A DNA stretch of 64,000 bases. Source: Hyaloraphidium curvatum SAG 235-1. Lineage: Eukaryota; Fungi; Monoblepharomycota. Below the pieces are notes generated by a model, which worked only from the letters and a program-made list of their open reading frames with translations, ran no database searches and was not told the origin of the DNA. The stretch is from contig JAIVFI010000026.1 of the NCBI GenBank assembly GCA_025558095.1, positions 62,001 through 126,000 on the forward strand, read 5' to 3'. This document shows positions 26,949-57,606 of the stretch, piece after piece (position 1 is the first letter of the stretch; each line of letters starts with the position of its first letter). Made by a program: the position numbers and the translations under genes.

Positions 26949-26987
26949 ATCGGTATCTTTTGATCAAGAACGAAGATGACAGAGATT

Positions 26988-32686: not shown

Positions 32687-33105
32687 CCCTATGAGAAAGG
32701 AAATGGGACATTCCAGGGGAAATGAATGGGCTGGACATGGGCTGGACATGGGGTGAACATGGGGTCCGACATGGGCCGGACATGGGGCCCGACATGGGAA
32801 TTCCAGTGGTCCGAGGTCGGTCAACATGGGAATCTGAGATAGGGAACATGGGAATTTCCTTGGTGGGGGAAAGGACCAGGGCCCGAGAATGGGGCCCAAA
32901 ATGGGAAAGTCTTTGTGCATCGCATGGGATGCCTGTGTGCAACATGGGATCGTGGCATGGGAAGGCGGTATCCCACATGGGTTAAACATGGGAACCGCGG
33001 TGTGCGACATGGGAAAGCCTTTTCTGACATTGGTCTTGACATGGGAACAATGGTCGGCATCGGGCGCCGAAAACGTTTGCCCGGTCCTTTTATTTGGCCC
33101 CATGA
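32687..33105 (+). repeat. Left TIR plus subterminal (A)CATGGG array
   Basis: About 15 CATGGG copies, many spaced about 11 bp apart. Confidence 0.9.
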
Positions 33106-33202
33106 CTTTTGACACCCCGCCAGCACTCCCAATAGACATCTGCCAGACTACTGATCGTTCTCCGTTTCGCTTCCGTAATTCCTCTGCTAAGTATCCACTT
33201 GA

Positions 33203-33268
33203 TGTCTGCTTCAGATCCGTATGTTGTCTGCTTCAGATCCGCATGTCGTCTGCTTCAGATCCGCATGC
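33203..33268. repeat. Three tandem ~22-bp repeats (core GTCTGCTTCAGATCCGYATG)
   Basis: Directly visible in the sequence. Confidence 0.85.
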
Positions 33269-33354
33269 GATCCGCTGTCAATGCACCTTTGCTCGGGCAG
33301 TACGCGTCCAAGCCTACCTACCCATGCTCCCGCCGCACGTGCCTGTGGTTGTCC

Positions 33355-36300
33355 CTAGAGCCCCGAAAAGGTTCCATTGAACCGGTTCGAACGCTGCGGG
33401 AGACGCTCAGGAGGGTCTGGCTGGGAAAAGTAGTCGGTGATGCTGTTCTGCTGGCCTGTTGGAAGGTGGCAATCAGCGTCCAGTCGCGCGTAGCCAGCGT
33501 ACGCACTGTTTCCGCGTGAATCAGCGTTCTCCTTCCCGCGTCCTCCCTTGTCTGCCATCGACTTGCCTGCCGTCGACTTGACCGCCGGCTTCTTGTTCGC
33601 GGTGGAGCCGGTCTTCTTGGTATTGCGCGGCTTCTTGGTTGTAGCTTGGCCGGAAGGAGAGGGGAGGTTGTCAGCAACTTGACCAGCACCCGAGTTTGCA
33701 ACCTACCAGCGTCAACGGTAGCTCCACGACGGCGTACTCGTGGGCCATGTGACTCGCCCAAGTTTGCGCCGAGCACGGATTCGGAGTCTTCGGCAGAGGA
33801 TTCCTCGCTCTCGTCGGGCGAATCGTTGCTGCTGCTGTCCGAGCGCTCTAGAGAACGGAAGAGGCGCCATCAGTCAAGAACTTGCGATCGGCCGCAGACG
33901 CACGGGTAGCTGGTGATGGACCATCGACCGGGTCATCCGATGCGGCCTGAGATACCAATGCTCGCGGCGAGGAGCTGCGTGGAGGGCTCGGAGAAGGTCC
34001 CCCGCGAATCAGTCGAATGACGTCGTCGGTACTCCGCGGGCTGTTCGCCAGGACCCAAGGAAACAGCTTGATGATGAGCTGCGCGAGGGGTTGGATGGAA
34101 TCAAATGTCGACGACGACGACGCGCCCGATGCCACAGTCCCAGACAGAGAATCCAGCTTGCCGGATTTCGCCAGGTAAACGATTCTGCCGGCCGAAACCC
34201 GGAAATGGTTTACGTCGAGATCGTCTGCTTGCGTGGAACGCGGTGTCATTTATCGGGATTGGTGCGGTGGCGGCACCTACCTCCGTCGATGAAGTTCGAA
34301 ACGAACTCCTCGCGCGAGATGCCAGCGCAAGCCTCCCAGTACAATGGATCCTCCGTTGGCGGATGAGGCTTGGTTTTCGTAGTCTGGTAGACCTTGGCCG
34401 GCGCCACTTCAGCGGCGTCGACTTCGCGGATGTCTGAGTCGGGCTCGCGGGGCAGTGGTGGGGCGCCGGCTGCGGAGATCCCCGAACCAGACGCCACCTT
34501 CACCGGCTTCTGTGAGATCGGCTTCTGCGCGGGCAGCTTCTGCGGGAGGAGCGGGGGCTTGGCGGCTGCTGCGGGTTCCGGCGTGGCTGCTGGCTTTGGT
34601 GCGGCTGCGGTGGCCTTGGGCGCGGTTGCGGGCTTGGACGCGGCTGCTGCGGGCTTGGGCACTGCTGCAGTGGACTTGGGCGCGGCTACTGCGGGCTTGG
34701 GCACGGCTGCGGTGGACTTGGGGGCGCCTGCTGCGGGCTTGGGCACGGCTGCGGTGGACTTGGGGGCGCCTGCTGCGGGCTTGGGCACGGCTGCACTGGC
34801 CTCCCTGGACTTGGGTGCGGCTGCTGCGGGCTTGGGCACGGCTGCTGCTGCGGTGGACTCGGGCGCGGTTGCGTGCTTGCGCACGGGTGCGGGCTTGGCA
34901 ACGGCTGCGGGCTTGGCAACGGCTGCGGGCATGGCGACAGTTGCGGGCTGGGGTGCGGCTTTGGCTAATGACGAGCAATGAGAACGGACGGTGCGTGCCG
35001 ATCGCGTGCTCGCTGCAAGCAAAGACCCACATTTCTTCTTCTCGATCTTCTTGAGGCGCATCTGCTCGTCGCTGTCCAAGCGCGGGGGCGGGAAAGGCGT
35101 ATCCAAAGCCGACGGCTGTGGGTCGCCGTCCACAGCAGGATCCTGCTGCTGGTCCTTCTCCTGGTCCTTGACTGGGAAGCAATTGGTGAGAGGTGCACAC
35201 AGGCTCTGCGGTCACAGCGAAGTCACGCACTTGCCTTCGCCACGCCCCTGCGTTGCGTCGAGTAGATCACTGCCAGGATCCAGGCGTCCTCGTAGAATGC
35301 CAAATACGGGAAGCTCTTGATCATCTGCAGCGAGAACGATCGAATGATCAGTCCGCATCCATATGGCCAAGTCCGCCTGCACTGGGTTCACGTACGTTTC
35401 CGACGTAGGTCTGGAAGCGGTTCTTGTAGAGAACAACCTTCGGCCCCGCGCCGCTGATCTTCATGTGTTTCATTTGTGGAAGATTGCCGTCTTCGTCCCG
35501 CAAGTCATTGAAGAGGTTTCCGATTTCGTCCCGCGAAACCTGCTGCGGTGGCATCAGTCAGAAGACTGCGCAAAGACCGAGCAGCCTCCATCGCATAACG
35601 CACCATCACAGCCTTGATGTTGAAGACGAATGCTGCCTTCTCGTCCTCGTCGAGGCACGCGAAAAACATCCACGCTCCAATTGCAATCCATTGGTCCTTG
35701 CACGGCACATACCCAGTATCAGTGCCGTTCTCTCTGCCGTCTTTGGGCGCAGATCGCGTCTTGTACCGCGGCTTGGCGATGTAGCCCTTCAGCTCGGCCA
35801 AGTCGGGTGTCGGATGGAAAGCTGCAAAGATGTCTTGGATCATGACCAGCGTTTCCCCCTGCTTCTCCGTGTCCTCCTTTGCACTCGCTTTCCGGAGCGT
35901 GAAGAAGTCGGGCCAGATGATTCCCTCGGCGGTGACTGATACGGGGACAGCGACGTCAGCAGTTGTGACAGCGAAAACACGCGGGGTCTCACACTGCGGC
36001 TCCATGCTCGAGGGTGCGTCCTCCACCATTTGGGCGGTGACCACGGCCTGTCTAGCGAACGGATACATGGTTGCGGCGCCGCTGTAGCGCGGTGAGGTGA
36101 AGGGGAGCGGGTCTTGGGAGCCGGCCACGGAATCCGACTCAGAGGAGGGTTTCCCCAGGCTTTCTGAGGACTCGGCGCGATTCCGGTACTCCCAAACGTC
36201 CACAAGCTTGACCATAATATCGAGCGCTTGTTCGGATGCGTGCTGGCCCAGCAGAGCGAATACCTCGTCGAAGGCGGCAAGCGCAGCAGCATGCTGCCCC

Positions 36301-36725
36301 AAAGCGAAGAGCTCTTTGTTTGTGACGAGATCCTCGGTGGCAGAGAAGGCCGCAGGCCAGTCTTCTGAATCAAAAGCTGACTGCAGGAGCTGGATCTTGC
36401 CCACAAGCGGGTCTGCCGGCACCCGTGGGTCCTCCCGGACGAGGGCACCGCAGCACTCCGCGAGATCCGCGAGGACCGTCTGGAGCTCGCTATCAAGAGC
36501 CCGGAAGACCTCGCAAAACGGCAGTGCAAATGCGCTTTGACCACCGAGCGCGAGCTCCGAGCCTCGGGTGAGCTCTGCAAGCTTAGCGGCGTGTGCGGCC
36601 TGTTTGGTGCCCCCGAGACGGATTGCCTTGAGAAGCGCCAAGCAGGGCTGGATCAGCGGCGCATGGGCCGGCGCGCCGCTGACTGCCGACGGCGCGCCGG
36701 AGGACGGTGATCCAGCGGCGGTCAT
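33355..36725 (-). CDS. Transposon accessory protein (multi-exon) with Ala/Pro/Lys repeats and a C-terminal PIP-box
   Basis: A chain of same-strand ORFs separated by intron-like segments; terminal exon QQNSITDYFSQP...GL*. Confidence 0.55.
34600..34930 (-). repeat. Coding minisatellite, 42-bp unit (AAVPKPAAGAPKST)
   Basis: Tandem GCGGGCTTGGGCACGGCTGCGGTGGACTTGGG... units. Confidence 0.85.
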
Positions 36726-37099
36726 TCCGGGATATGGATGTGTGGTCGCGCGGACGGTTTGCGCGACTCACGCCAAAGCGCCGCGCGCCAATTCGCCGAA
36801 TTCGGGATCCGTAAGAGGAAGTGCGGGAGGTGAAAGGCGTCCTTTCCGGCCAATCAAGTATGTCTACGTTCATCTCGCTTTGGATAAACGATTCGGGGGC
36901 CAGGTCCGTTTGCTAGCTGCCACTGGTCCACTTTGCATCTGCTTTCAGTCCACATTAGTTCTGTTTCGGTCGGACAAAGGAAAGACCGTCTACTTGCCAT
37001 TGCACGGTACGAAAAGACACCTAATCATCCTCGTACAAGTTGATCGCACGCGCAAGCGATCGTCCCTCATTCCTCGTTGCTTTCCGTCGCCCGCGAAAG

Positions 37100-38110
37100 C
37101 TAACAATACTGAGCCCTTTGGCATTTACCACCCGGAACGCCGGCTCCTCGAGGTCGACTTCGAAGCCCGGGAATAGCCAGCTTGTCTCGGCGGTAATTGT
37201 GACCTGGGAAAGGGGTTAGGAAACTTGCCGGGTGAGGCACCAACGCGCTATGACGTACTCGGAAGCAGTGGGTCGCGAATGAATCGTTGAACACGTAGTC
37301 GAGCCCAACCTCTACCTGCACCGGGGTCGCGTCGGGCGGGCGCTCGCGGGTGTCGTACTTGGCGACGAATTCGTTCGCGAGATGTAGAAGTGCGCCAGGG
37401 TATGTGACCATCCCAATCAAAGCGACCTCGGTCTCGTTGATCTCGACGATCTGGAAGTATTCGCGTCAATGCGGAGGTCCGCCGGTGCAAAGCAGGAAAC
37501 CCATAACCTTTTCGATGGTCATATGGTGCGTCAGCACGAGGCGAAAGAAGACTCGCCCGTCCGTCTCCTCGATGTTCGGTAGCCGGACAACGACCTTGGA
37601 TGGCAACGGCGGGTCCACGGGCTTGTCGAACTTGTCGATGGTGTACACGACCTTGCTGCTCGCGTCCAGAGCAACGTGATCGGTGATGTCGAGCGCCGCC
37701 GTCAGGAGCTCCGCCTTCGGGCGCCAAGTTGTCAGTCAAGCGGGCCGGGTCGTGATGCGCGGCCCACGGAGACATGCCTGCGACGGCGTGACAGCCCTTA
37801 TAGCACCACTCAGGGACATCTTCTGTTCCTTGGTCAGTTTCTCAGCGCTCTCCTGATGCGCCACGCGACTGGTCAAGAACGCCAGATCGATAGCAAGTGT
37901 CCCAACCAACCCTTCCGGTGCGCTCGACAACGCCGAAGTTCACCCTCCACGACCGGAGAATGTCCCGTGAGCTGATCCCGTGTGCCGACAGGAGGTGGGC
38001 GTGGAACTGGCTGGTTCCACTGTACCGCGTCTGGCAGCCGACCACGAAGCAAACGTGCTCCTCGACCCCATCTCCATCCCCGACCCCGTCCCCGTTGCCC
38101 CCGTCCCCGT

Positions 38111-38145
<35 letters not shown>

Positions 38146-40282
38146 TCCTTGGCGTCGGGCTTGTCGGGCGTCGCCTTCTTCAAGGCGAAGAACCCGAGCG
38201 GCGATGCATTGATCTGCGGTTTGAGGAGGAGCCGGTACGGGATATCAAGCGACTGCACGTGGGTTTGCAGCTGGTCCGTCTACAACGGAGAACGTCTCCT
38301 GCATGAGCGGTCTTGCCAAAGCGTGCCGGAGGGACGAGGACTTACGGTCGGGTTGAGTTCGAGGAATCTCAAGTTCTTGCCCTTGGCCTTGTGCTTCTTG
38401 GATGCCGGCCCCGGAAAGGGCGCGTACTCGTCGTCTTGGTGTTCATCCTCGGACTGCTCGTGCGTCCGCTTGTCCTTGCCCTTGGCCTTGTCCTTCTTGG
38501 ACGCCGGCTCCGGATCGTGCGCGTGCTCGTCGCCTTGGGGCTTCGGGGCGCTGCCGGCAGACGACACATCTGTCCACCGGACGGTAAATGCTGTTAGATG
38601 CGTCCGTCCTCGGCGCCGTTCGAGGTAAGCCTACCCCGGACACGCGGCTTCTTGGCTTTAGTCTCAAAGGCCCGTCCCCTCCCCCGCCCTCCTTTGCCAC
38701 GGCCCCGCTTCCGCGGCTCTGCCACAGCAGGCCCGCGGAGCTCTTCATCCTCGTCCTCGGAGTCCCCCTCCGGCGGGGGGTCGGGGAGCTGCCCGTCGTC
38801 CTCCGGCGGCGGCTGCGGGGCGACGACCGGGGGCGTCGCGGCGCGCGCCTCGGAGTCCTCCTCCGGCGGGGGGCCGGGGAGCTGCCGGTCGTCATCCAAC
38901 AGCCGCTTCTTGTAGACCTTGATGTGCTGCAAGGAAACGGAGTCAGTGGCCGCCCGTGGCGGTGGACGCTGCCCAGAAAACCACCTCGAAGATGGCCTTC
39001 TGCTGGTCGTCGTCCACCCCCGAAACCACCGTCTCGCCCGACGCCAACTTGCTCACGACGTCTTGCAGCCAAGAGGCCATCTCGGCATCGTCCGTGAGCT
39101 CGAGGAGCTGGCAGCGGAGTCAATCATGGCCCCGCTCCGGTCCAAGGGTCCGTGCGTGGAACACCCACATCCTTGAAAAAGTCCATAACGATGGGGCGCA
39201 CCGGCCCGCCCGCACGGACCACCGGCGCCTTGAAATACCGCTGGCCCCCATACTTTCTGCTGACTATCTCGCGACTATCAGCGGCCTTGTATAGCAGGTC
39301 CAGCTCTTCGATGACTTTGCTGCTGCGCTCCTTCTTGTAGTTGTCGATGTGCTGCAAGGGAAGGTCATTGGCCGCCGCCGGAAGGCACCGCTTACTGAAG
39401 CCCACCTGCGAGATGGCTTTCGCCCTCCGTTCATCCAGACTGCCCAACCGGACTCGCTTGTGCTTGAACTCGGTCTTCATCCATGCCGCGTAAGCCTTGG
39501 TGTCGAAGTCTGTAGTGATTTCGGCGAGCTAGCAGCGAAATCAGTGGTGGCCTAGCTTCGTTGGGGAATCTCGGAGACACCCACGTAGTCGAACAGGCCA
39601 ACGATGTCCGGGTGCGGGCCGCCGCCGGCCGCTTCGGGAACGTCGCAGGGTTCAACTTCTTTGCTAGCGAGCTGCCTCGCCAGCGTCGCTTTTAAGAGGT
39701 CGAGCGCGTTCGCCGGTTCGTCCGCCGGGACGGCCTGATCCTTCGGGTCGTCCTGGCCGCCGGAGGGCTCCTCTGCCGGTCGTGACAAAGGCGTTAGACA
39801 GCGCGCGACGCCGTTGCTGCTGGGCGTGGCTAACCCTCTCTCTGCTTGCCCTTGCCCTTCGTCTTCTTGACCGCGTTGGCCGGCTCCGTCGGCTCGCGCG
39901 GCCCGCCTGACGGGTCCTCTGCCGGTCGTGACAAGGCGTTAGACGGCGCGCAACGCCGTTGTTGGCCGTGGCTTACCCTCCCGAGGATTGGACTTGGCCT
40001 TCTTCTGCTTGGGCGCGTTCGCCTTGACCGCGAGCGACGCGTTCGCATGCGGCTTGGACTTGGCTTTTCGACTGGGCGACGTGGGGGCCGGTTGGTCTGC
40101 GCACCCGTATAGACGCATGTTCAAAGACTGCAGTGGCAGCCGGAGGCGAGTCTCGCGCGCGTACCCGCTGCAGGAGAAGGCACCCGGGCACCCGGGGTGA
40201 CCACGTCCCGGACCCGCGGCCTCGGGCGCCGCTGCGGCGGCGTCGTTGCTTCCGGCGCGGGCGCGGCACCCTTGGGGGGCAT
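37100..40282 (-). CDS. Transposon cargo: multi-exon basic/acidic nuclear-type protein with a C2H2 zinc finger
   Basis: Probable start MPPKG; NLS-like tracts, (DG)n repeat and CFVVGCQTRYSGTSQFHAHLLSAH; many canonical introns. Both ends uncertain. Confidence 0.5.
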
Positions 40283-40437
40283 CGCGTCGAGCGCGAGCGG
40301 AGGAAGAAGCCGGTTGCGGGAAAGAAGCCGGTTGCGGGAAAGAAGCAGAATGGAAAGGGAACGAAAAGGGATGAGCAGCGAACGAACGACACATCAAATT
40401 CTTAAGGTCGGGTTCTCGAGACGTACCATCTGGGGCC

Positions 40438-41340
40438 ATGGCGAACTTCCGGTGGAACGAACCCTGGGATCGGGGACTAGGTGCCGACGAAAGGGGCGCA
40501 GTGACTGGATTCGTTTTCACGAAGGTAACCCGGGAGCCTGGGGTTTCGGAGCTCGTGCGGCCCCTCGAGCCCGAGACCTGGCTAGGCGACGAAGCCTACC
40601 AACGGTGGCTCGAGCGCAGGGCCCAGTACTTTCCCGGAGTGGTGTTTCTCGACGGGCAGTTGACCCGTTTTGCCGTCGACATCTCCGCGGGGAACCCCGG
40701 CAACGCTTACCAAGCGTGGCGGAAGGTGGGCGTCGAGGGATACGTCCGCCAGAACATGCGCGCGAAGGGATACGAGCACGGCGTCGGCCGCGAAGAGAAG
40801 CATGTGCGCAGCGAAACGCGCTTCGCCATTTCACGACGCTGCTGGATGTTCCTCGCGCCGCTCTTTGTCAAGGAAAGGTCCCATTGGATCTTTGTCGCGT
40901 CGATGGCCCACTTCTTCGACCCAACTGCCGGCACGGGACGAGTGGGCACCTTCACGTTCGCTTTGGATCTCCTCTCGCGGTCTGGTTCACGGGCAGGGGT
41001 ACTTCGGGATGCCAGAGGCGTCGAACAGGTGGTGCACTCGATCCTCCGCATCGAGGGCTACGAGGTGGCGAAGGAGGAATCGTACTTGGACATTGATTTG
41101 GACGTCGGCGACGCCAAGCAGCTCGACGGGTCTGCATGCATGGTGTTTGCTATGGCCCACGTCGAGCTGTTCGCATCGCTCACCTTGGAAGGAGGAGGGC
41201 CCCACACTTGGGGTCCGTGGAATGCAGCAATCGTTCAAAAGAGACTGGAGGCATGGTACAAAGGCGCTGGGATCAGGCAGAGCGAAGTTCCCAAGTACAG
41301 GCACCATTTGGTAAAGGACATAGTGTTGGACATCATCTGA
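40438..41340 (+). CDS. Ulp1-like (peptidase C48) SUMO/Ubl protease, transposon cargo
   Basis: WLGDE, FLAPLF..SHW (His), ALDLL (Asp) and QLDGSAC (Gln/Cys) in C48 order. Confidence 0.8.
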   Translation: MANFRWNEPWDRGLGADERGAVTGFVFTKVTREPGVSELVRPLEPETWLGDEAYQRWLERRAQYFPGVVFLDGQLTRFAVDISAGNPGNAYQAWRKVGVEGYVRQNMRAKGYEHGVGREEKHVRSETRFAISRRCWMFLAPLFVKERSHWIFVASMAHFFDPTAGTGRVGTFTFALDLLSRSGSRAGVLRDARGVEQVVHSILRIEGYEVAKEESYLDIDLDVGDAKQLDGSACMVFAMAHVELFASLTLEGGGPHTWGPWNAAIVQKRLEAWYKGAGIRQSEVPKYRHHLVKDIVLDII

Positions 41341-41687
41341 GGTAGGCTCCCCCTTGGCACCTCTGCAATCGTCTTGCTGATTCGCAGGAGGGTGTGCCCA
41401 ATCCGGGAGATGCTTTCGGTTGGCTACCATGGTCGTCCGGCTTCTGGTGGCAGCGTTTACCGAACCGATGCGGGGCAACGCGACGTGGAATCACAGCAGA
41501 TGGCGCCCAGAACACGTCCGACGAAACTTGTTGGGTAATCCTATTTGTACAGGGAGTATAACCAACAATGTAGCTTAGCTTGCTTTGCCTATGCCGATGG
41601 CCACCGTGCGTGGCTCGCCAACCTGTCCGTCGATGCGGGTGCTGCGCCCCAACGAGGGCTGGCGTGCCCGGCGCAGCGGGTTCCCTT

Positions 41688-42378
41688 TCAATCGAGGCTG
41701 CTTGCCGCAGAAGATGAGATCCGATCGATTCCATCGGAAGAGGGGAGGTACGGCGGGGCGCCGGTGCCAAAGGCTCTCGCGCCTCGTGTGGAGCGGCTTC
41801 CGCGCCCCCAACGCGCCTGCCGTTGATCGTCCCGCGTTCTTTTCGCCTCCTCCTTTGCCCTGCGAGCATCCAGCTCGCGGTGGAACGAGGGCGAGTTCCG
41901 CCACGGGGAGCCCACCTCTCCGGGGGAGGACGTGTCCAGTTCGTGGGTGTCTTCGTAGGCCGAATCACCCGGGGACGCGCCGGGTCCCGCGTCGTCGTCG
42001 ACCGCTGCCAGATCCAGCCATCGGCTCACCGTGGCCACCGCCCGGCCGCGTTGATCAGAGCGCCGCGGCCCGGCCGGTCCTGGAACTGCCGCTTTCGAGC
42101 CGCGGCTGCCGTTGCTTGCCGGTCGGGCGGCCTCCTTGGGGGCGTTGCCACCAAGCGCAGCAGACGTTCGGCGCAAGTCGGGAAAATTACGCCAGCTCAA
42201 GGTCCGTCTGCGTGTCGTCGGGAGCCGTCTCCTTTTTCCTGAGCCGCCGTTTCGACGGCGGTTCCGCGTCCTCTTCGTCGCCGGAACGCGCGCCCGCGGT
42301 CTTGCCAGCGGCTTCGCGGCGGAGCCGGCGACGCTCGGCCGGGCCGACCGCCGCCGGTGACGAGGTTTCGGATGACAT
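41688..42378 (-). CDS. Small charged hypothetical cargo ORF (frame-disrupted or spliced)
   Basis: Overlapping ORFs 42187-42480 and 41688-42200 with NLS-like and acidic tracts. Confidence 0.3.
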
Positions 42379-42612
42379 AGTTTTCCAGAGAACCAGAGTC
42401 TGTTTGGCGAGCCCCGCGAAGACGCGATCCGCTGCGATACCGTTTTGTGTCCGCATGGAGTCCGCTTTTGATCTGCTCACTATCTACTTGCCATCCGCTT
42501 TGCTTCCCAATCCCATAACCTACCAGTTTGAGGCTAGGTTTCACATTCTCGTCGGCCGGCGCTAGTTTTCTCGAGGCACACAATCCGACCCCTTTTCTGT
42601 GCGCTGATACCG

Positions 42613-45600
42613 ATGAGAAGCCGGTGCCCTTGTTCAGGCTGTCGTGGCACGCATGCCCATCTGAATAGAACCATCAAGAAACACGTGAACGAGAGAGGCG
42701 TGTGCCACGAGTGGGGCTCCCTCGCGGACGGGGATCCGGCCCTTGGTGATCTCCTGGCGACGCACTTCTCGGCGAAAGCGTGGTTTTCACGGAAACACTA
42801 TACCAACGATTCCGCCGAGCGAAGAGTCCTCACAGCCTCTACGTGGGGTGCATCTGCTGATGACTTTGCACCGTCGCCCCCCGGCGAGGTCGCCGACCCT
42901 TCTCCCATCCATGATCCGGCGCAAAAGGCTCCGGACGTGACCACGCCTGCGGGCCAGACAAACGAGACGGCTGGTTCCGACTTTGCGGATAGTGGATCCG
43001 AGACGTCTGCTTCGGACTCTGCCTTCGGATCTGCACATGAATCGGAATCCGACTCTGCACTGGAATCAGACTCAGACACGGAACCCGACGCGGAACTGAA
43101 CGATTTCCACGAGTCGGATTTCGCAGAATCGGACTACGGAAGCGATGATGAGGCCTTTCTTCAAGGAATTGAGGAATCCCAGGAGGACTGGAGGAAGGCA
43201 AACGAAGAGGAGCATCGGCGGCGGATGGAACACCGGAAAAGGGAGGAGGAAGCAGCGGCGGACAATGCCAAGGACTTTTTCTTCTCTTTCCAGGGCAGCG
43301 GTTCCATCCAGACGGCTCACCCGAGCTTCAAGTCCGACGAGCACGTAATACGATTTCTCACCGCGGAACGGCTTCACGTGGAATACAAAGGGACAGAAGA
43401 CCATTACACCGACTTCATGACCAACCTTCTCGGTGATGCATCGGTGTCCCGCTACATGGCCGGGGTGCGGCTTGCCGCACTCTCGGGGGGTTATGCTTAC
43501 GAGAGTGAGACCACTCTCTCTACCGTGCGTGATCGGCTCCTTATTGCGCTACCCACAGGACATCATGTTTGCCGCAACGGATGCGTACTTTTCCATGGCA
43601 TTGACAGCAGGAGTGGCATGGACTTGGCCAAGGCCGTTGCCTGCCCCATCTGCCAAGCTGCCCGATACCTCAGGCATCCTTCCGACCGCCGTGGAGACAC
43701 TGGTACAGCACACAAGTACGCTTTCTACTTCCCCATAATCCCCGTCCTGCGAGCCATGTTCGGCCACTTGGGCCGGGCTAAAGAACTCAAATGGTGGTAC
43801 GGCTATTTCACCGAGATGTTGGGGCGGTTGCAGCACGAGATCGAACAGCAGCAGGCTGCTGCCGAGCGAGAGCAGGAACATGCGCGTCAGGGGGGAAAAC
43901 AAGGGAAGGGAAAGCAGAAACTGCAGCCGCAGCCGCAGTCACAGCCGTCACAGCAGCGCCCAGCAGCAGGCCGTGTCGTTGGGGACGTATTTGACGGAAC
44001 GGAGTTCCAGCGACTGATCGACGAAGGATTCGCGAATGACGACTCTGGAAATCTCGATCCCCGCACCGTCTGGCTCGAGATCAGCGGTGATCCCGCCGAA
44101 ATGTTCAAGCAGTGAGTTCATCCTACCATCCAATCCGTGTGGATGGACTGATCCGACCACAATAACAGGGCGAAGAACACGTTCGAACCCGTGCTTGCCA
44201 AGATATCCAACCTCCCGCCCGGCATCCGAACTGTTGATGGTGGTCAGCACCTCTGCATGCTCCTCCCCGGTGGGATGAAGTGGGATCACGAGTCGGTCAT
44301 CCGCCCGCTGCGGGAGGAGCTGCAGCAGCTGGCAGAAGGTGTGCCCGGGGTCAAGGATGCGTCCGACGGGGTCACTTTTACTATGCGCGGCCACGCGTAC
44401 ATGGTGCAAGCAGATGCGCCGCACATCAAGAAGATGGCAGGGTCTCGGGGACACAACGCGACCGTATCTTGTATGTTCTGTGGATTGGTTGGGTACGGGC
44501 GGTGCCCGTGCCTTCACCTGCCGGACGTGGCAAACGTGAAGCTGAGTGAGGCCTACGGGAAGCGTGGAGGCCGGATCGACTACGACCCGGAGAACCTTCC
44601 GATGTACACTGTCGAGACGTATGCTTCGACGTACGCCCGACTTGAGGCTCCCAAAGCGGCAATTGACAAGATCCAGAAGGAAACGGGTGCGTGCACCGGC
44701 GGCGGCGAGATAAGCTCGCGTACCTGACTTGGCGCTCGCCTCCTGCTGCTGCTGGTACCGCAGGTATCATGCGTCGCTCCGTGTTCGACATTTGCTTCTC
44801 GAATCAGGGTCTCCCGGTCACGCGCACTGCGTTCGGCGCGATGCGGCTTCCGCACTGCCTCGCGTACGACCGGATGCACCAGGTTGCTGGCAACGTCCAA
44901 CGCCTTTACCAGAGAACACTGAAGCCGAAGATGGGGAAGAAAGAATGGAAAAAGTTCGCGAAGGAGATGGCCAAGAAGCACAAGATCAACGTCAAACCCA
45001 CCCACATCACGGATTCCTCGCACCACTGCCAAGGGATGACGACGCAGGAGTACAACACGGCCGTCAACTCCAGGGACACTCCATCCGCCAGATGCCGTCT
45101 GACACCTCGTCAGATCGAGGAGATGGACCATGATATCGTGGCTTCGGCGCTTCTCCTCCCAAGCTGTTTCGGGCGCGTTCCCCGCAGCTTGGTCCACGAG
45201 AATGGGTACAAGACGGAGGAGTGGTTCACCCTCTTGAAACTGTACTATGTTCCCCTCCTCCATGATCGCCTGCTCCCCGAGGACTTTGAGGGCATCGCGT
45301 GGCTTGTTCGAATTGGACAGCTCACGGCGAAGCACCGCGTGGATACCGGTCTTTTGCACGAGGCTTGCTTAAGATACGTTCTCTGGCGCGAGGGGTGGGT
45401 GCGTGATTCTCAGCATTTAGTATTACCAGTAACACGCACCCGCCGCCCCCACCTCGCTCTGCTGCTCAGGACGTGCTATGATCGATCCGAGGAGGTCATG
45501 GGTGACGTCTGCACGTACAATCTGCACACGTTCCTGCATTTTGCGGAGCGGGTCGATTGTAACGGGGCTCCGTGGGCAACGTCCCAATTCCAAACAGAGC

Positions 45601-46605
45601 GAAAGATCAACGTTTTGCAACAATTGGTCGACAACCGCCGGGCGCCCATAGCGGACATGGCCGGCAAAGTTCAGGGCCAAACTCGGCTTGAGCTGGTGAA
45701 GATGGACCCTCGAATGGAGACAGCCTTCGTCGACCAGCGAAAGCTCCAGCGGAAACAGTTCGGAAAGATCTACACCGGCACAGGCTTCGAATTGCGATGG
45801 CCGTACCGGGTACACCGGGAAGAAGAGGTTGGTTGGTTGCAATAACCGTTTTCTGGGGCACTAAGCATCCAAACAACGTCCCCGCACACGGCGGTAGGGC
45901 CTCAAAAAGGTTCAGATCAAAGCGCTCCTCCGATACTACCGAAAGGGTGGCACCTGGGGGGGGTATCTTGCCAAAGACGACATCTCCCGCGCCTTTCGCC
46001 AGTTTGCCAGGCTTGAACTACCGGGCAAGGCGACTTTTGGCTCGGTGATGTCTTCGGGGAAGCCCGCGAGACGGCTCCCTTTGGTGTCTCACCGGGTCCA
46101 GGCAATCAACCGGACACGGCGCCTCAACCACATGGCTGCGTTCGACGATCCGGATCATCCTGGAGTCGAACGTTTTGGTTTCGTGCATTACTACATCGTG
46201 CACGAAGTGCAGGGCGAGGAGCATGCCTTTGCGTGGATGTCGGTCATCAAGGCGGCCGGTTTCGACGCGGCGGCGGGGTGGGGAATCAAATACTTCCAGT
46301 TTCAGAGAGACGGCTCTCACATGGAACATATGTTAGTGCCTGTCACCTGCCTGGACCGCCTCGTCGGGCTTTTGAGGCGCTGGGTAGGTGACCCGACCGT
46401 GGCTTCGACCGCGTTGGAGCCCACCGACTGGGGTTCGGACCCGATGGCCAGGGAATGGCATTACATTCTCGACCTCAACTGGATGATTGATCCCCGGGAT
46501 TATGTGAGTCCAGAAGCTCGTGCAAGGGAGAAGGTTCTGGGTGCGGCGAGGAAACAAAAGACTAGGGAACTCAAAAAGCGGATCAAGAAGCCGGATTCGG
46601 TGTGA
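42613..46605 (+). CDS. CMC/EnSpm-type (Transposase_21-like) DDE transposase, spliced
   Basis: CRNGC..CPIC..RY, YFPIIP.L, DVFDG, ISGD, NLPP, ADAP..GHNA..C..C, DRMH, KTEEW, NLH..LH, QFQTER. Introns at about 44112, 44687, 45395 and 45828 restore the frame. Confidence 0.9.
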
Positions 46606-46819
46606 CGATGTGCTGCCGAACGCCTATGGCGGAATCTATATCGCAGCTACGTTGCTCCGCTATCCGTCTGACTGTAGTCCGTTTTGTCCTAGTTGTGTCT
46701 GTTTGCGATCTGCATGTAGTCCGCTTTCACTCCTAACCCTGTTTTCACTGATCGCCTCACTCCCTTGGAGCCCATCGACCAGCAGTGTAGGTCTCTTCGC
46801 CACCCAACAAAACGGTTCA

Positions 46820-48791
46820 ATGATTACTTCGGTGGACGGTGCCGGCGAAGAAGGCGGCGCGGCTGCGGCGCCCCCCCTTGGCCCAACGCGACAAACGAGT
46901 CAGGTCGACGAATTCGGCGAGGAAGCACACACAGGCAGCAGCGGCGACACGGCTGTCGCATCCCCGAAACCCTGCGGTATTGCACAGTCCCGCGCCGCCG
47001 GAACCAAGGAGGATCTCGTTAAAGTGCGGCCGATTCTCATCCCGTTCCATTCGAAAGTCTGACAACAATGTGCAACAGGCGCTGCTCTCGCTGGCCGTGT
47101 CGATGGGGCGCCGGCTGTCGGATGTCGCGCCGGACAATGGAGCCGTGCGTGGCCTCATCCGCGCTGTCTGCCAGGACGTTCCTCTGCCGACTGTGGCGGA
47201 TCTGGTCAGCGAGGTTCATCGGCGCGTGGCCAGCCTGCTCAAGACCTGCTCCGGCCATCTCCTGGTCTCGTTCGTCGCCGATGACGGTACGGCAATGGAC
47301 GTCAAAGACCCAACGTCTCTCAAGCTCGTGGTCGAGTTTTTGTCCGAGGATTGGAAGCTTTTTCAGGCTGTCGTTGGCGAGCGAATCGCTCGCAACGGGA
47401 GCGTTTCGTTCGACATGATCAAGAGCATGATTGTGGACGAGCCCCTGGCCAGGCACGTGGCGCTGCTTGAGAACGAAGTAGGACACGCGCCCTGCTGGGG
47501 CAACTCCCGCATTGTGTCACCGACAAACGACCCGCGTGCAGATCGTAACAATTACAATGGCGATCCCCCCTGGCTTCCTCAGTGGTCAGCAGACCCCACG
47601 CCTCGAGCATGACCGCTTCGAGCTTCTCGGCTACGGAATCAAGCCGTGGCTCTTCCGGGTGCGGGAGCTCGTCCGTAAAGCGCAAAAGGCCATGCCCTAC
47701 CCGACCTCCTCCCTACCGCCACCAGCGACTATGTTTCATCTCCGGTGCGTGAGGGCGCGCGGTATGCGTGCATGTCGATGCTTGCTGACTCGATTTTCGT
47801 TTCACCACTTGCTCGCCAAGGCAAGCGCTCGTCAACGCTTGGGAAGCTGTGCAAGATTACGATCTGCGGGACACTCCGAGGGACGACGGTCGACGCCTAC
47901 ATCAACGCGGGCTCATTGCAGCGGCACTGATTGACTTACGAGTCCTATTGCATGATGCCCAAGTGGATCTGATTGACCGGACCAAGAGTCGCGGCCTTGC
48001 AGACCTCCCAAAACTGCAGCTGGAGCAAGCTGCCGAGCTCCTAAGTACGGCAGACAAGGAACTCAAGTCTGCAATTGAATCGAACGAGCGTTATGTCCTC
48101 CTTTGTATGGGTGAGCTTCCAGCAGCGTTGTCGCGACTGGTCCATTCGAGGGCTCCTATTGATCTTGCGGTCCTGGGCAGTGCTTAACCCGAACATGAGG
48201 CTCACGTGGCTGTCCCGAAAGATTGCCGCCGTCCAAGACGCCTTAAAGCATGCCGTCATCCGGTCGCAACTGGAATCGTACAAGAAGACCGCCATGGAAA
48301 TGCTCATTTCAGCAGCAAGCGCGATCACAAACGACGCCGCTCCCGTCGCCACCGCGCGTCCGTACACCAAGCCGCGCGCTTCACTTAGGCATAACCATCT
48401 CCAAGATATCGAGGATTTCGCGGTACAGGCTCGTCGGCAGAACCACGGCAAGAGCGAGGCCGTGGTCTACATCAACGAGTCGGTCAGTGCCAACCGCGAG
48501 GAACTGATCGACATCCCCGGCTATTGGAAGGTAGGACGCGTAGTGTTTCGCCAGAGGGCAGCCTGGGAAGGCCGATTGACGCACCCTTTGTCACAGGAAA
48601 ACCGCGAGCGATTCCCGGAGCTCTACGGCATCGCGAGAGAGGTGTTCTCGTTCCCTTTGGAGGCCGGCCTTGATCATTACATAGCCCTCGACCAGTGGGT
48701 GGCAGGCGGTACATATGACGACGAGCAAGCACGGATGGGGCACCTTAGGTGCTGGCTGGGCATTACGGAGACCGGCGAAATGTTTTCTTAA
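46820..48791 (+). CDS. Divergent hAT-transposase-derived gene (cargo), spliced
   Basis: VSFVADDGT...VVEFLSEDWKL resembles the hAT S..D.WT...HFI..DWKL motif; IPGYWK-ENRERFPELYGIAREVFSFP resembles the hAT dimerisation domain. Confidence 0.65.
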
Positions 48792-48997
48792 CAATTCGTA
48801 CTTTGCGTCGCCCTCGCCTTCCGAATCGGTTCTTTGGAACCTCCACGGGTCTCTAAGAGACACCTCCAAAGGCACGTGCACAGAGAGGTGGTTAGTTTGG
48901 ACGCCGGCGACCTAACGCCAAGTAGATGTGATGCAGAGTTGATGCGGACAGAAAGCGGACTGCATGCGGAAGGCAAGCAGACTTTAGGAAGAAGAAC

Positions 48998-50131
48998 CTA
49001 TACATCGATCTTCTTCGCCTTCCCTAACAACCTCGCGGATGTTGCGCGAGTCGGCTGCTTGGGCCGGTGCCCCTTCAGAAAGCCGGAGATCACTCTTCGC
49101 GATTCCGCGTCGGACTCCGGAACCTCGCTCTCGCGGATCCAGATCCGCTTCGGTTTGCGGGTGCGCCGTCCACTGCGTGCCCATCCTTCGTACGCGCTCT
49201 GACGCGTGACGTTGAGCTCCAGGCCGAACCCGTCACCAGGGTCCCGGACTCGGTGTACCTTCACCACCGGTGTCGGCAACCTGCACGGCGTGGGCTTCTC
49301 GTCAAGTTTGTGTTCCAGCCGCGCGACCATGGAGTTCCCAATGAAACCGGGCGACGCATAGTTAAGCAGAACCTCGTCATGGTAGGAAATGTTGCGCGAG
49401 GCGACCACTCGGGCCCCCCAAAGGTTCTCCACCTTGACCGGCTTGCCCAAAAACACCGCATTGCGCTTCTGATGGTCCTGTGCATAATTGGCGAAGCGCA
49501 GGATGGAACCTCGATTGGCCCCGTCAACCGAAAATCCCAAAGCTTGAATGAAAAGAACATAGTCCCCGCATGAGCTCTTCGCACACGTGGTTCCTTTGTA
49601 GGTGCCCAGCACGTCGCCCTTGCGGAACGCGGTGCCTGCGGCAGACCGCCCACAAAGGGACCGCTGCAAGATCAGCTGCGCCTCGGCGGCACTAGTGCGC
49701 CACGTGGCCGTCGGTGAGCTGTCGAAGTGCGCCATTGGGCACAACGGACAGGCGACGTAAAGTCCGAATCCGATGCCTCCGGCTTCGTTGACAGCAGGCA
49801 ACGCAACCAGGCGGGGGTCGTCCGCAGGTCCCTGCAGCACAGCGCGCGGGTCCCGGCCACCAGGAGCGCGGGCGCAACGGGGCAATTGGTGGGCCGGAGA
49901 CGCTCGATGGCCATCCCAGGCCTCCGGCGTCTGCGTGTCCGTCGAAGCCCCATTTTCCGTGTCGCTGGCAGTCCCGTCGGCCGAGACCACGGGCGGCGAG
50001 ATGCCCCGTGCGACCACGCGGCGGGCGCGCTGCTGAAGGCGCTTCTTTTCCAGCACCTGGCGGCGCTCCTCGGCCCGCCGTGCCCGCAGCACTCGTGAGC
50101 GCTCAGTTGAACTGTTCAGCGTCTTTGCCAT
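48998..50131 (-). CDS. SET-domain protein (cargo)
   Basis: GFGLYV, FRKGDVLGTYKG, VDG..RGSILRFANY, VVASRNI...EVLLNY. Confidence 0.75.
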   Translation of the reverse strand: MAKTLNSSTERSRVLRARRAEERRQVLEKKRLQQRARRVVARGISPPVVSADGTASDTENGASTDTQTPEAWDGHRASPAHQLPRCARAPGGRDPRAVLQGPADDPRLVALPAVNEAGGIGFGLYVACPLCPMAHFDSSPTATWRTSAAEAQLILQRSLCGRSAAGTAFRKGDVLGTYKGTTCAKSSCGDYVLFIQALGFSVDGANRGSILRFANYAQDHQKRNAVFLGKPVKVENLWGARVVASRNISYHDEVLLNYASPGFIGNSMVARLEHKLDEKPTPCRLPTPVVKVHRVRDPGDGFGLELNVTRQSAYEGWARSGRRTRKPKRIWIRESEVPESDAESRRVISGFLKGHRPKQPTRATSARLLGKAKKIDV

Positions 50132-50459
50132 GGTCGCTGTTTCCCTGGGGCTCTGCATGGGCATGGGAGGTGTTTGTGTTTTTTCCAAAACTGCGCCGAC
50201 CCGTCCCGCACAGTTGTGAGTCCACTGAAGCCCATGATTACACTCTTTCATGTGTCGGCCAGATGTCGGAACGAATGGCGAGCTATCGTTTGTGTCACAC
50301 TATTGATCTGCATGACTTCCTGAGGGTTTCTGTTCGTTGTCGACCTTGTTGTCTGTATGCGATCCGGAAAGATTCTGTTTCGCGATCCGCACATGTTTGC
50401 TTTCTATCACAACTGCGCTTGGAAAACACTACGTTGCACCCAATCACATGCCGACAACT

Positions 50460-51536
50460 TCAAACAGTGCGATTCCGCAAACGCGCCGGAAGAGTCACCT
50501 GCCACCACTGAGTTTCGAGGTCACGCTGCTTCAAAGCTCGGTAGGATAGCGTCTTGACCGCGAACCCTAACACCTCCACGCGCTTGAGCTTCCGCAAAGA
50601 CATAATGCCAGGAAGCACGTGGCTGTCCGGAATCTCGTGCATGGGACTGCGGCATGACACGATTATTGTCTGGATCTCCACGTACTCCACGTTCCTGGGA
50701 AGCGTAAACCTCGCGTAGTTGTCAGACTCCATGGTCGGCAACGCGAGCGACCACACGTGTTTCTGCACCCGTAGTAGCTTCCGGCAGCCCGAGATCCCCG
50801 AAAGTGCGAGCCTCCGAAGCTCCGTCCCCGAATCGCCACAAGCGTTGCAGACCTGCTTGAAAACGCGCGGCCCGGCCTTCAGCGTCGTCAAGCGACGCGC
50901 CACTTCAGTGGGCATTTCACAAGCAAGCTCTCTCTCCGATGTTTGGAGACCCCACGACCCGAGACCGTGGAAGAGCGCCTTCTCAACGCATCCCAGAACC
51001 CCTTTCAGGACTTTAGCGCCCCCGGTTACGCCAATCTCCAGGTACGACAAGCGGGAGACAACCACTTCCAACATCCCGAGGGACGGAAGGAAGGCGAGGT
51101 CGACGTTGGTGAGGGTGAGCTGCCTTTGGTGCTCCGCGGGGTCGTGCCTTGTGAGGAGAAGGCGCAGCTCTCGCGCGCGAAATGAGGGATTAAGGCCGAT
51201 GGCGAGGCTGTGGAGGTGCGGCAGGGCTATCTTGAGGAACTGAAGCTCAGGGTGAAGGGCGGCGGGGTCGTTGCCAAAAGGAACTTGGGGATCCAGTGTC
51301 AAGTGCCTCGTGACCACATGAATAAGTTCCTCCGTGCCTTCGTGCACCACCGAATCGAAGTAGTCGGCAGCTGTGCGCGAGCTTGGGGGTCGGACGCTCC
51401 GCAAGGCCACGTCCAAAACCGCGGCGCGGATCTCCTTGCCCGTGCTCGCGAGCGCGACTCGCGCATTAGGGTCCAGGAAACGCGCGATTTCCTTCAGAAC
51501 CTCCGGTGGGCAGCTCCGAAGAGCGCGTCCCGACAT
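50460..51536 (-). CDS. F-box protein with degenerate LRR-like region (cargo)
   Basis: LRSCPPEVLKEIARFLD...LASTGKEIR. Confidence 0.65.
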   Translation of the reverse strand: MSGRALRSCPPEVLKEIARFLDPNARVALASTGKEIRAAVLDVALRSVRPPSSRTAADYFDSVVHEGTEELIHVVTRHLTLDPQVPFGNDPAALHPELQFLKIALPHLHSLAIGLNPSFRARELRLLLTRHDPAEHQRQLTLTNVDLAFLPSLGMLEVVVSRLSYLEIGVTGGAKVLKGVLGCVEKALFHGLGSWGLQTSERELACEMPTEVARRLTTLKAGPRVFKQVCNACGDSGTELRRLALSGISGCRKLLRVQKHVWSLALPTMESDNYARFTLPRNVEYVEIQTIIVSCRSPMHEIPDSHVLPGIMSLRKLKRVEVLGFAVKTLSYRALKQRDLETQWWQVTLPARLRNRTV

Positions 51537-51834
51537 GGTCACGGTGGGCAAGATCCGGGACCCGAGAAACGGTTCGGACCTCGGCTGATCGCCGCCTTGC
51601 GATCGGACGAGCGGATCCATGCAGACGGGCGAGGATGCCCGAGCGGATAGAAAACGGACTAAAAAGGGATATGAAACAGATTTCAAACGAGTTCAAAACG
51701 GATGTCAATGAGATGGCGAACGGATTGAATGCGCATCCATCTGAAGCCTGCGGCCCCTCTAGGATGGTAATGCCAGTGAGTGAACGTCATGAACAAGGCG
51801 ATACTCTTCGAGTTTGTGCACTGTCGCTCAGGGA

Positions 51835-52088
51835 TCCCATGAGGCGTCCCATGTCCAGCCCATGTCCTGTGCTTCCAAGCCCTAACCACCTGGGTCTGGA
51901 CGGCCTGGTACATACTATTCCCATGGCCAATCCCATTCTCCGGACTTAGGGGTTAGGCTCCCCATGGAATATTCCCATGCCAGCCCATGTGATTTCCCAT
52001 GTCCAAGCACTTTTCCCATGCAAGTCCCATGCGGGACGGGTTTTCCCATTTGTTTCCCAGGGCTTTCCCATGGAAATTTCTCATAGGG
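51835..52088 (-). repeat. Right subterminal CCCATG array plus TIR
   Basis: About 11 CCCATG copies, the reverse complement of the left array motif. Confidence 0.9.
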
Positions 52089-57398: not shown

Positions 57399-57606
57399 GG
57401 GTGACCGCGTCCGGAGGGAGTCTCAAAACGCCGCGGTGGCGCGGTCGTGCTCATGGCTCGGCCGAAGGATGAAATGCGCGGCAGAGACGAGCTCAAATCA
57501 TCGAACAAGAAACCCGACAAAACGTGCGAAAGCTCGACTCTGTCCCATCCGTGCCGTTACGCCCGGTGACATGCCCTCGCTCCATCCCAACCCCGGTCCC
57601 TCTGCC

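Follow-up and report, generated by a model that had tools for sequence, protein, structure and literature searches.

A recently active 19.4-kb cut-and-paste DNA transposon with a highly divergent CACTA/EnSpm-group transposase in the fungus Hyaloraphidium curvatum

A stretch of 64,000 nucleotides from the chytrid-grade fungus Hyaloraphidium curvatum (referred to below as the window) contains, at positions 32687–52088, a 19.4-kb segment in which a transposase gene is accompanied by several other genes between inverted repeats. This raises the question of what kind of mobile element the segment is, and whether the accompanying genes act together on host chromatin, as a preliminary description of this DNA had proposed. 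The segment is a real cut-and-paste DNA transposon that was active very recently. We consider it likely that it is a single copy of a transposon that belongs to the CACTA/EnSpm–Mirage–Chapaev–Transib (CMCT) group, is very young, and appears to be autonomous. The element is densely coding, with nine ORFs of at least 300 residues against 0.165 expected from composition-matched shuffles, and at least six coding regions are present besides the transposase.

Both ends of the element carry the same perfect 12-bp terminal inverted repeat (TIR), CCCTATGAGAAA, on the forward strand at 32687–32698 and on the reverse strand at 52077–52088. The window contains two matches in all, against an expectation of 0.08, and the perfect TIRs starting with CCCTA noted in the preliminary description are confirmed. 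All copies of the element terminate in CCCTATG...CATAGGG. These CCC..GGG ends depart from the 5′-CA..TG-3′ termini that CMCT transposons have “in most cases” (CACTA or CAC..GTG in EnSpm). A related relic end on another contig, C19, starts with CCCTAAG; a second end was looked for near this relic and none was found, and an exact-match search of metagenome contigs with the left terminus gave no match.

Mirrored arrays of the hexamer CATGGG, also seen in the preliminary description, lie just inside the TIRs. The motif occurs 15 times in forward orientation in the first 400 bp and 11 times as its reverse complement in the last 400 bp, compared with five forward and three reverse-complement occurrences in the 18.6 kb of interior sequence (approximately 0.1 per 400 bp). 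The left array consists of 15 (A)CATGGG copies on the forward strand (32726–33046), with a core at 32726–32798 that is phased at 11–12 bp, and the right array consists of 11 CCCATG motifs on the reverse strand (51836–52072). The element thus has oriented subterminal arrays at both ends, as is characteristic of EnSpm/CACTA transposons.

Three copies of the element were found. They are 99.4–99.8% identical, have their ends at exactly the same base, and differ from one another in the right flank. One of them is cut at position 67 and carries a (TTAGG)n telomere cap there, showing that a chromosome end was formed within the transposon. The target-site duplication (TSD) was reconstructed across copies, no single assembled copy carrying both halves. 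The left flank of the window copy ends in CAG (32684–32686), the left half of the TSD, whereas the matching right half adjoins the copy on contig C24, whose right flank reads CAG followed by CGATCAAG. Where the interrupted retroelement is intact, its sequence runs ...CATCAG|CGATCAAG..., with a single CAG, and the C24 right flank is 99.8% identical to an intact retroelement copy over 1503 bp. The uninterrupted site that is rebuilt by joining the window left flank to the C24 right flank was seen in nine intact paralogues of this 25-copy retroelement. The reconstructed 3-bp CAG duplication agrees with the 2 to 5 bp (3 bp in EnSpm) of CMCT transposons. On the right side of the window copy, the element interrupts a gypsy/chromovirus integrase exactly at position 52089.

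These flanks bear on two alternative readings of the locus. Of the three copies, two are located at the ends of contigs or chromosomes, as would be expected if the segment were an immobile subtelomeric duplication whose inverted ends are fortuitous. This explanation is largely refuted, and we regard it as very improbable, given that all copies share the same terminal base and have three different right flanks, that a 3-bp duplication marks a site at which the paralogues examined have no insertion, and that the element contains an intact DDE transposase. It is, on the other hand, highly probable that the window copy is a chimera, which arose when two copies recombined ectopically or when long reads were wrongly joined in the assembly; in that case the window and C24 “copies” would in part be one physical element. 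The left flank of the window copy belongs to the retroelement and its right flank to the gypsy element, that is, to different target sites, and the missing right half of the retroelement site is the one found next to the C24 copy. Moreover, the window and C24 copies show no differences across 40186–50398 and six in the last 1.7 kb; the C24 contig terminates inside the element, with many 1-bp indels in its last 5 kb; and the assembly holds two left ends but three right ends. The same picture would, however, result from a genuine reciprocal exchange between copies, and the three distinct right flanks still imply at least three insertions. Between the copies, 10 synonymous and 20 nonsynonymous substitutions were counted, which does not point to selection; at a divergence of at most 0.25%, the copies are too recent for the substitution pattern or the shared gene content to be informative in this respect.

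The DDE transposase is predicted to consist of four exons encoding roughly 1,200 residues, colinear with proteins of the tnp2 family (tnp2/DUF4218), and was searched exon by exon. The product of exon 1 (42613–44111, forward strand, as are the others) has a Cys/His N-terminus resembling Transpos_assoc; it further contains a linker of acidic residues, a CxxC cluster, and, in SGDP, the first catalytic Asp. A GTGAGT donor follows at 44112. The second catalytic Asp, in QADAPH, and the C(2)C motif lie in exon 2 (44169–44688), which is colinear with P0013 and P0024. Exon 3 (44766–45842, 5′ splice boundary approximate) contains D-x-M-H, the H(3)H motif, and the catalytic Glu (QTER). Exon 4 (45898–46602, boundaries approximate) would encode the C-terminal domain and is colinear with residues 721–807 of P0024 (E = 9e-5 in a two-subject search). 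The reading across these exons is open in all three copies, which agrees with the earlier view of a spliced transposase with no obvious lesion, as judged from the predicted gene structure.

Members of the CMCT group are defined by a D, D, C(2)C, H(3)H, E motif set (PMC12730594). All of these motifs are present, as D in SGDP, D in QADAPH, C-x2-C in SCMFC, H-x3-H in LHTFLH, and E in QTER, and they align with the matches in the tnp2 family. The Glu of QTER lies 20 residues after the second His, and in an alignment of 20 relatives H287, H291, and G300 do not vary and E311 hardly varies. The transposase is nevertheless highly diverged within the CACTA/EnSpm group. The Pfam family Transposase_21 matches exon 2 at 22.9 bits (E = 5.6e-5), below the curated cut-off of 28.6, and Transpos_assoc at 18.2 to 18.5 bits, below its cut-off of 27.7. 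DUF4218 gave no direct Pfam match, whereas the aligned relatives carry both Transposase_21 (89 bits) and DUF4218. Among 1.84 billion representative proteins the best nonself match had E = 1.6e-6. Searches of the PDB with the single exons gave nothing or chance matches, and a 20-sequence transposase profile did not reach RAG1 or Transib.

The CACTA/CMC-like assignment in the preliminary description is borne out by the TIRs and subterminal arrays, by the 3-bp TSD, by a transposase of tnp2/DUF4218 type that has the CMCT motifs, and by the exact ends common to three differently flanked copies. The element resembles EnSpm/CACTA transposons, including fungal EnSpm (PMC12730594), in its short TIRs, oriented subterminal arrays, and TSD length, in its multiexon tnp2-type transposase with the D, D, C(2)C, H(3)H, E motifs and a putative DUF4218-like region, and in carrying extra genes beside the transposase. 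It differs from them in its CCCTA..TAGGG ends (CACTA or CAC..GTG in EnSpm), in the distance of its transposase from catalogued sequences, as quantified above, and in its monoblepharid host. Plavaka, a fungal CMCT family, shares the fungal host, a tnp2-like transposase, and a compatible TSD of 2 to 3 bp, and can also carry a gene for an epigenetic enzyme (TET/JBP). Its ends, however, are TGT..ACA (PlavakaA) or CATCA..TGATG (PlavakaB), which are absent here, and no TET/JBP gene was found in the element. The preliminary description had suggested an undescribed giant family. That the family is undescribed is plausible because the transposase has no near relative among the representative proteins and the termini are atypical, and no description of DNA transposons from Hyaloraphidium was found in the literature searched. 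“Giant,” on the other hand, is overstated, since 19.4 kb falls inside the size range of plant CACTA elements and there are only about three copies.

Two of the accessory ORFs can probably be assigned to enzyme families. The first, at 40438–41340 on the forward strand (300 residues; public model P0029), probably encodes a diverged cysteine protease of the Ulp1/C48 type, as judged from its motif signature and its neighbors in a language-model atlas. It contains SHW ... ALD ... Q-L-D-G-S-A-C, so that His, Asp, Gln, and Cys occur in order, with the same Gln-to-Cys spacing (+6) as in the C48 genes of the host. A regular expression (HW..D..Q-x-[ND]-G-x-x-C), composed after sight of this very sequence, matched only this ORF and true host C48 genes among 457,000 residues of six-frame ORFs, and matched in none of 100 shuffled sets. 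Among the atlas neighbors, 26 of 30 belong to the Peptidase_C48 hit set, with scores of 0.94 to 0.95. The ORF had no Pfam match at E ≤ 1; a six-frame genome search with PF02902 (E ≤ 10) returned host genes only among the matches listed, without this ORF; a three-sequence SENP8-like profile did not detect it; the PDB gave no match; and a homolog search returned the query itself only. Hence, the Ulp1-type protease named in the preliminary description is backed by a catalytic signature and C48-like neighbors but not by Pfam, PDB, or homolog matches.

The second, at 48998–50251 on the reverse strand (417 residues; 377 in public model P0030), probably encodes a diverged SET-type methyltransferase, an assignment drawn from Pfam, a host-derived HMM, and atlas neighbors. 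Its alignment to PF00856 extends over positions 8–104 of the 105 in the profile, at 12.6 bits (cut-off 22.4) and E = 0.2. A compact host-SET HMM found it with E = 0.0064 as the sole match among 636 window ORFs, and 27 of its 30 atlas neighbors are SET clusters (score 0.91). The segments RFANYAQ...RNA and EVLLNY align to the SET core motifs RF-x-NHSC-x-PN and ELxFDY, the NH of NHSC being replaced by NY (His to Tyr). A heterogeneous host-SET profile, which was uninformative, ranked the ORF only eighth. A six-frame genome search with PF00856 returned host genes only among the matches listed, the PDB gave nothing beyond chance matches, and a homolog search found the query alone. The earlier SET label is partly borne out by the compact HMM, the alignment over the full profile, and the SET-like neighbors, but its Pfam score stays far below the cut-off. 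Single-sequence AlphaFold models of the two ORFs had pLDDT values of 33 (Ulp1-like) and 30 (SET-like) and were unusable. PDB matches of the Ulp-like, SET-like, hATC-region, and transposase exon queries to a designed Kelch protein and to dihydroxyacetone kinase were rejected as chance matches.

The remaining coding regions are less clearly assigned. An Ala/Lys/Pro-rich repetitive ORF of about 320 residues (34246–35211, reverse strand) has no Pfam family and includes a 42-bp tandem repeat, of which the copy on contig C22 has one unit fewer than the window copy. A 406-residue ORF (35505–36725, reverse strand) shows a coding-like GC pattern by codon position and no family match. A coding-like exon run at 37103–39938 (reverse strand), probably one multiexon gene, has acidic and basic low-complexity tracts and, within 37845–38279, a C2H2-type finger (C-x4-C-x12-H-x4-H). 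The finger motif is present as described earlier, but its profile backing is weak (FOXP-CC, E = 0.026). At 50460–51536 (reverse strand), an ORF with a repeat-like C-terminus has a putative F-box-like N-terminus, as proposed in the preliminary description, but the match is weak, covering about 34 residues with E = 0.16 to 0.17 for the Pfam families F-box and F-box_4, its 12.3 bits falling below the cut-offs of 20.5 (PF00646) and 32 (PF15966). A PIP-box protein, also proposed earlier, was dropped, the evidence being a single short motif that occurs at chance frequency. Matches to the Pfam families TrAA12 and eIF3_subunit look like low-complexity artifacts and were set aside.

Downstream of the transposase, at 46988–48788 on the forward strand, lies either a separate gene or the 3′ part of the transposase transcript, which ends in a segment resembling the hAT dimerization domain. 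Its exons were taken from public model P0001, which fuses this segment to the transposase. Dimer_Tnp_hAT exceeds its cut-off of 21.4 bits (23.8–25.8 bits) in spliced P0001 only, over positions 4–45 of 84, and gives E = 0.14 in the unspliced ORF. Pfam identified no hAT catalytic core, and the hATC region had no PDB match beyond chance. Of the hAT-derived gene in the preliminary description, what is seen is a match to the first half of a dimerization profile in the spliced model, but not a hAT catalytic core.

The preliminary description had named copies without the cargo, or cargo genes that are single-copy and syntenic in relatives lacking the transposase, as observations that would speak against its reading. 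The outcome was in favor of the element: all copies carry the genes, and no host paralog was found for the four genes tested (transposase, Ulp-like, SET-like, and F-box-like), which for this reason look like resident genes of the element rather than fresh captures. A composite origin, in which the hAT dimerization-like gene and perhaps other ORFs are nonfunctional and carried passively, as leftovers of another transposon or captured pieces inside a CMCT element, would account for a Dimer_Tnp_hAT match 3′ of the transposase and would fit with the frequent capture of genes by plant CACTA elements (PMC13317346). We nonetheless think it improbable, as the searches found neither a catalytic domain of hAT nor an internal TIR nor a donor in the host, and since the long ORFs remain open in every copy. 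Somewhat less doubtful, yet still on the unlikely side, is that the element is a real CMCT transposon whose accessory ORFs serve transposition (a TnpA-like repeat binder, regulators) or unrelated roles, with the Ulp1, SET, and F-box labels over-reading short motifs and no chromatin or ubiquitin kit present. Such a reading draws on the accessory domains scoring below curated Pfam cut-offs, except for the hAT-like segment in spliced P0001, on homolog searches that returned only the Ulp-like and SET-like queries themselves, on the Ulp-like ORF being missed by the small C48 profile and the SET-like ORF being placed eighth by the heterogeneous one, and on the chance-level PIP box. It also draws on the fact that En/Spm transposition needs a second protein, which binds the repeats. 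Against it, two independent lines of evidence agree for the Ulp-like ORF and likewise for the SET-like ORF, and the alignments cover the catalytic motifs in both.

By analogy with En/Spm, the transposase, or a TnpA-like accessory DNA-binding protein, would bind the helically phased CATGGG repeats and pair the ends, upon which the DDE domain would cleave at the CCC termini and insert the element with a 3-bp stagger. As the most likely role of the accessory genes we put forward, only tentatively and on the strength of precedents, that they would modulate SUMO and the chromatin state of the host in the surroundings of the element; the anti-silencing or host-manipulation kit of the preliminary description is speculative. 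A stronger version, which we hold to be rather improbable, is that the element founds an undescribed CMCT lineage, with CCC termini and 11-bp-phased CATGGG repeats, whose deSUMOylase-like, SET-like, and F-box-like proteins would jointly reprogram the marks on its own copies (SUMO, histone methylation, and ubiquitin) as a multienzyme anti-silencing module. Under such a reading, alternative splicing in the manner of En/Spm might also yield a catalytic and a noncatalytic product from one transcript.

There are precedents for parts of this arrangement. CACTA-ULP elements are known from grapevine and rice (PMC2528002), and these, like KI-MULE/Kaonashi (PMC13317346), are DNA transposons with an Ulp1-like protease domain. 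In the plant elements, however, the domain is recognizable as a transduplicated host ULP1 and is picked up by conserved-domain detection, whereas the H. curvatum ORF stands alone, has no host paralog, and is missed by the Pfam C48 HMM. SET genes in HarbingerS and MuDR elements of Phytophthora and TET/JBP genes in fungal DNA transposons are cited in PMC12730594; these likewise are transposon-borne chromatin or epigenetic enzymes proposed to act against silencing, but either the transposase superfamily or the enzyme differs. VANC and KIU provide anti-silencing precedents (PMC13317346). A probable C48 protease together with a SET protein in one element was not found described in the literature searched.

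The element looks intact and recently mobile, and since its transposase is far removed from the CMCT families catalogued so far, it would widen the known diversity of the group. It was from this group of transposons that RAG1 arose. If the Ulp1-like and SET-like genes are active, they would be a fungal addition to the transposons that carry chromatin-modifying enzymes, such as those with VANC/KIU, HarbingerS SET, and fungal TET/JBP genes, and the element would give a compact setting in which to test how silencing is evaded by transposons.

The 19.4-kb element at 32687–52088 lies in the genome of Hyaloraphidium curvatum, a monoblepharid, chytrid-grade fungus (assembly of 31.9 Mb in 55 contigs; window at C26:62001–126000). 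As the preliminary description had it, the element is delimited by perfect terminal inverted repeats (TIRs) and mirrored subterminal arrays. The 12-bp sequence CCCTATGAGAAA occurs at both termini and nowhere else in the 64-kb window, where 0.08 matches would be expected by chance. The motif CATGGG is found 15 times in forward and never in reversed orientation in the first 400 bp, and 11 times reversed and never forward in the last 400 bp, compared with five forward and three reversed occurrences in the 18.6-kb interior. In the core of the left array, the repeats are phased at 11–12 bp, which is about one helical turn. The G+C content is approximately 60% within the element versus 70% in the flanking host genes, and the element contains nine ORFs of at least 300 aa, against 0.165 expected from composition-matched shuffles. 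Among the neighboring sequences, one host ORF (55197–57422, minus strand) seems to join a SAM-methyltransferase domain, at its N terminus, to a PLP-dependent decarboxylase domain. Upstream of the element, a stretch of ~61% G+C holds ORFs of 1290 aa (19493–23362, plus strand) and 499 aa (25467–26963, minus strand), neither of which matches a Pfam family; these may belong to further uncharacterized mobile elements.

The genome contains three copies of the element: the full-length window copy, a copy at C22:687045–706339 (99.44% identical, lacking the first 66 bp), and a copy at C24:665210–682029 (99.80% identical), whose contig ends at approximately element position 2579. The right ends of the three copies coincide to the base and continue into unrelated flanks, and because these flanks differ, at least three insertions are required. 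To its left, the window copy abuts a retroelement (28303–32686; 1303-aa ORF with an RVT_1 domain), so that the transposon sits within one copy of it. This retroelement occurs at about 25 other loci (e.g., L015–L024) with 99.6 to 100% identity and has therefore been active very recently. Across the insertion point, the sequence is ...CATCAG|CGATCAAG... in all nine intact retroelement copies that were examined, and the right flank of the C24 copy reads CAG, then CGATCAAG..., followed by the same retroelement at 99.8% identity over 1503 bp. Since the window left half and the C24 right half rebuild the intact retroelement site, the two flanks represent one insertion with a 3-bp target-site duplication (TSD), CAG.

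The right flank of the window copy (52089–52912) is the C terminus of a gypsy/chromovirus integrase (SH3_Tf2-1 plus chromodomain), cut exactly at 52089, from a family of about eight copies with 82 to 98% identity. With the retroelement on the left and this integrase on the right, the flanks of the window copy come from two different insertions. In agreement with this, the window and C24 copies are identical over 40186–50398 but differ at six sites in the last 1.7 kb. Either recombination between two copies or an assembler switching between copies produced the mixed flanks. One left end is absent from the assembly, and the C24 contig stops within the element amid noisy 1-bp indels. The many single-base indels at C24:677000–682029 (element positions ~35264–40186), relative to the other two copies, are of the kind usually seen where the end of a long-read contig is poorly polished; they result in apparent frameshifts in that copy. 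Synonymous and nonsynonymous differences between the copies number 10 and 20, respectively, with no new stop codons in the C22 copy; given the youth of the copies, selection would not yet be visible.

At position 67 of the C22 copy, within the CATGGG array, the element breaks off, and (CCTAA)n directly caps the break where the contig ends. Many contigs, C22 (706340–706474) among them, carry the complementary (TTAGG)n at their right end; the 5-mer TTAGG thus appears to be the telomere repeat of this genome, which makes the C22 copy the end of a chromosome. A telomeric 35-mer gave 653 matches; every one lay at a contig right end in a single orientation, and the left ends yielded no match in the opposite orientation. 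Preceded by CAG, a solitary, diverged left end at C19:1904–2100 reads CCCTAAGAAG... and then at least nine GACATGGG units at exact 11-bp intervals. Its identity is 76 to 85%, and no partner right end was found within 8 kb. This solo end indicates that an older relative of the family was once present in H. curvatum.

The transposase is encoded on the plus strand in four blocks that are colinear with tnp2-family proteins: 42613–44111, 44169–44688, ~44766–45842, and ~45898–46602, matching residues 141–200, 254–364, 472–628, and 721–807, respectively, of P0024, an 822-aa relative with Transposase_21 (89 bits) and DUF4218 domains. Searched separately, the exons gave only subthreshold Pfam matches (Transpos_assoc, E = 0.002–0.003; Transposase_21, E = 5.6e-5). 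The intron between exons 1 and 2 (44112–44168) has GTGAGT...CAG borders. Alignment with relatives shows that the protein has retained both Asp residues (first, SGDP; second, QADAPH), C-x2-C (SCMFC), D-x-M-H, H-x3-H (LHTFLH), and a Glu (QTER) 20 residues beyond the second His of H-x3-H; in a 20-sequence alignment, these two His and one Gly are invariant, and the Glu nearly so. Exon 3 yielded 21 matches at E ≤ 0.001 among 1.84 billion representative proteins, one being the organism's own model. The best nonself match (E = 1.6e-6) came from metagenome or run assemblies, and lower-ranked named matches came from the mucoromycete Calcarisporiella thermophila, the tick Ornithodoros turicata, and the powdery mildew Podosphaera aphanis. 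No other family members were found in the H. curvatum genome beyond the three copies, and the transposase is very isolated. The near-identical public model P0001 (KAI9015639.1; 44098–48788) starts inside exon 1, removes the H-x3-H and Glu region as a 604-bp intron (45399–46002), and continues into the hATC-like gene downstream, so that the transposase and this gene are fused; the model structure is either a prediction error or an En/Spm-like alternative product.

With these catalytic motifs, the TSD, subterminal repeats, and at least three insertions giving three copies, the proposed CACTA/CMC-like transposon holds up, and the element resembles EnSpm/CACTA elements in how it works, but its termini differ from the usual CA..TG. 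Because of this terminus, and because the placement follows motifs, TSD, and repeats, we file it as a putative divergent member of the CACTA/EnSpm–Mirage–Chapaev–Transib group, not as EnSpm or Plavaka proper.

The accessory genes fared unevenly against their initial labels. The Ulp1-like ORF (40438–41340, plus strand, 300 aa) had no Pfam, PDB, or homologue match; 26 of its 30 language-model neighbors are in the Peptidase_C48 set (scores 0.94–0.95). The pattern HW...D...Q-x-[ND]-G-x-x-C, which has canonical Gln–Cys spacing and was composed after inspecting this sequence, recovered only this ORF and genuine host C48 genes from 457,000 aa of six-frame ORFs, and nothing in 100 shuffled sets. A C48 fold is probable. 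The SET-like ORF (48998–50251, minus strand, 417 aa) matches Pfam SET at E = 0.2, but aligns over profile positions 8–104 of 105. When six compact host SET domains were combined into an HMM, this ORF was the sole match (E = 0.0064) among 636 window ORFs, with the alignment spanning NHSC-like and ELxFDY-like motifs, and 27 of 30 language-model neighbors are SET clusters. A SET fold is quite likely. Activity is in doubt, since NY stands in place of NH. A C2H2-type finger motif is seen in a run of several coding-like exons (37103–39938, minus strand). The F-box label (50460–51536, minus strand) has only a Pfam match at E = 0.17, and the supposed PIP box (QNSITDYF; ORF 33358–33702, minus strand) occurs at chance frequency. 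The gene labeled hAT-derived (46988–48788, plus strand) ends in a hAT dimerization-like segment that exceeds the Pfam cutoff in the spliced public model alone, where the match covers just the first half of the profile. The minus strand also encodes a 406-aa orphan ORF (35505–36725) and an Ala/Lys/Pro-rich repeat protein (34246–35211) that differs between copies by 42 bp; the tract is encoded by a 42-bp tandem repeat with a 21-bp subperiod (34562–34845), which is shorter by one unit in the C22 copy than in the window copy. Outside the three copies there are no paralogues of the transposase, Ulp-like, SET-like, and F-box-like genes, which are therefore not recent captures from H. curvatum.

Established for this element are its ends, the TSD, more than one insertion, and the intactness of the catalytic motifs. 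By analogy with En/Spm, an element protein would bind the phased CATGGG repeats, candidates being the Cys/His N terminus of the transposase, the C2H2 protein, and the hATC-like protein; this protein would synapse the ends, and the DDE domain would then excise and reinsert the element with a 3-bp stagger. In the literature searched, we found no description of these cargo types together within a single element, or in any fungus of an early-diverging lineage; precedents exist for each cargo type taken singly. Drawing on such precedents in other transposons, namely Ulp cargo in the plant elements CACTA-ULP and KI-MULE (PMC2528002, PMC13317346), SET genes carried by the Phytophthora families HarbingerS and MuDR, and fungal transposons that bear TET/JBP genes (both PMC12730594), we hypothesize that the Ulp-like, SET-like, and F-box-like proteins may counter host silencing.
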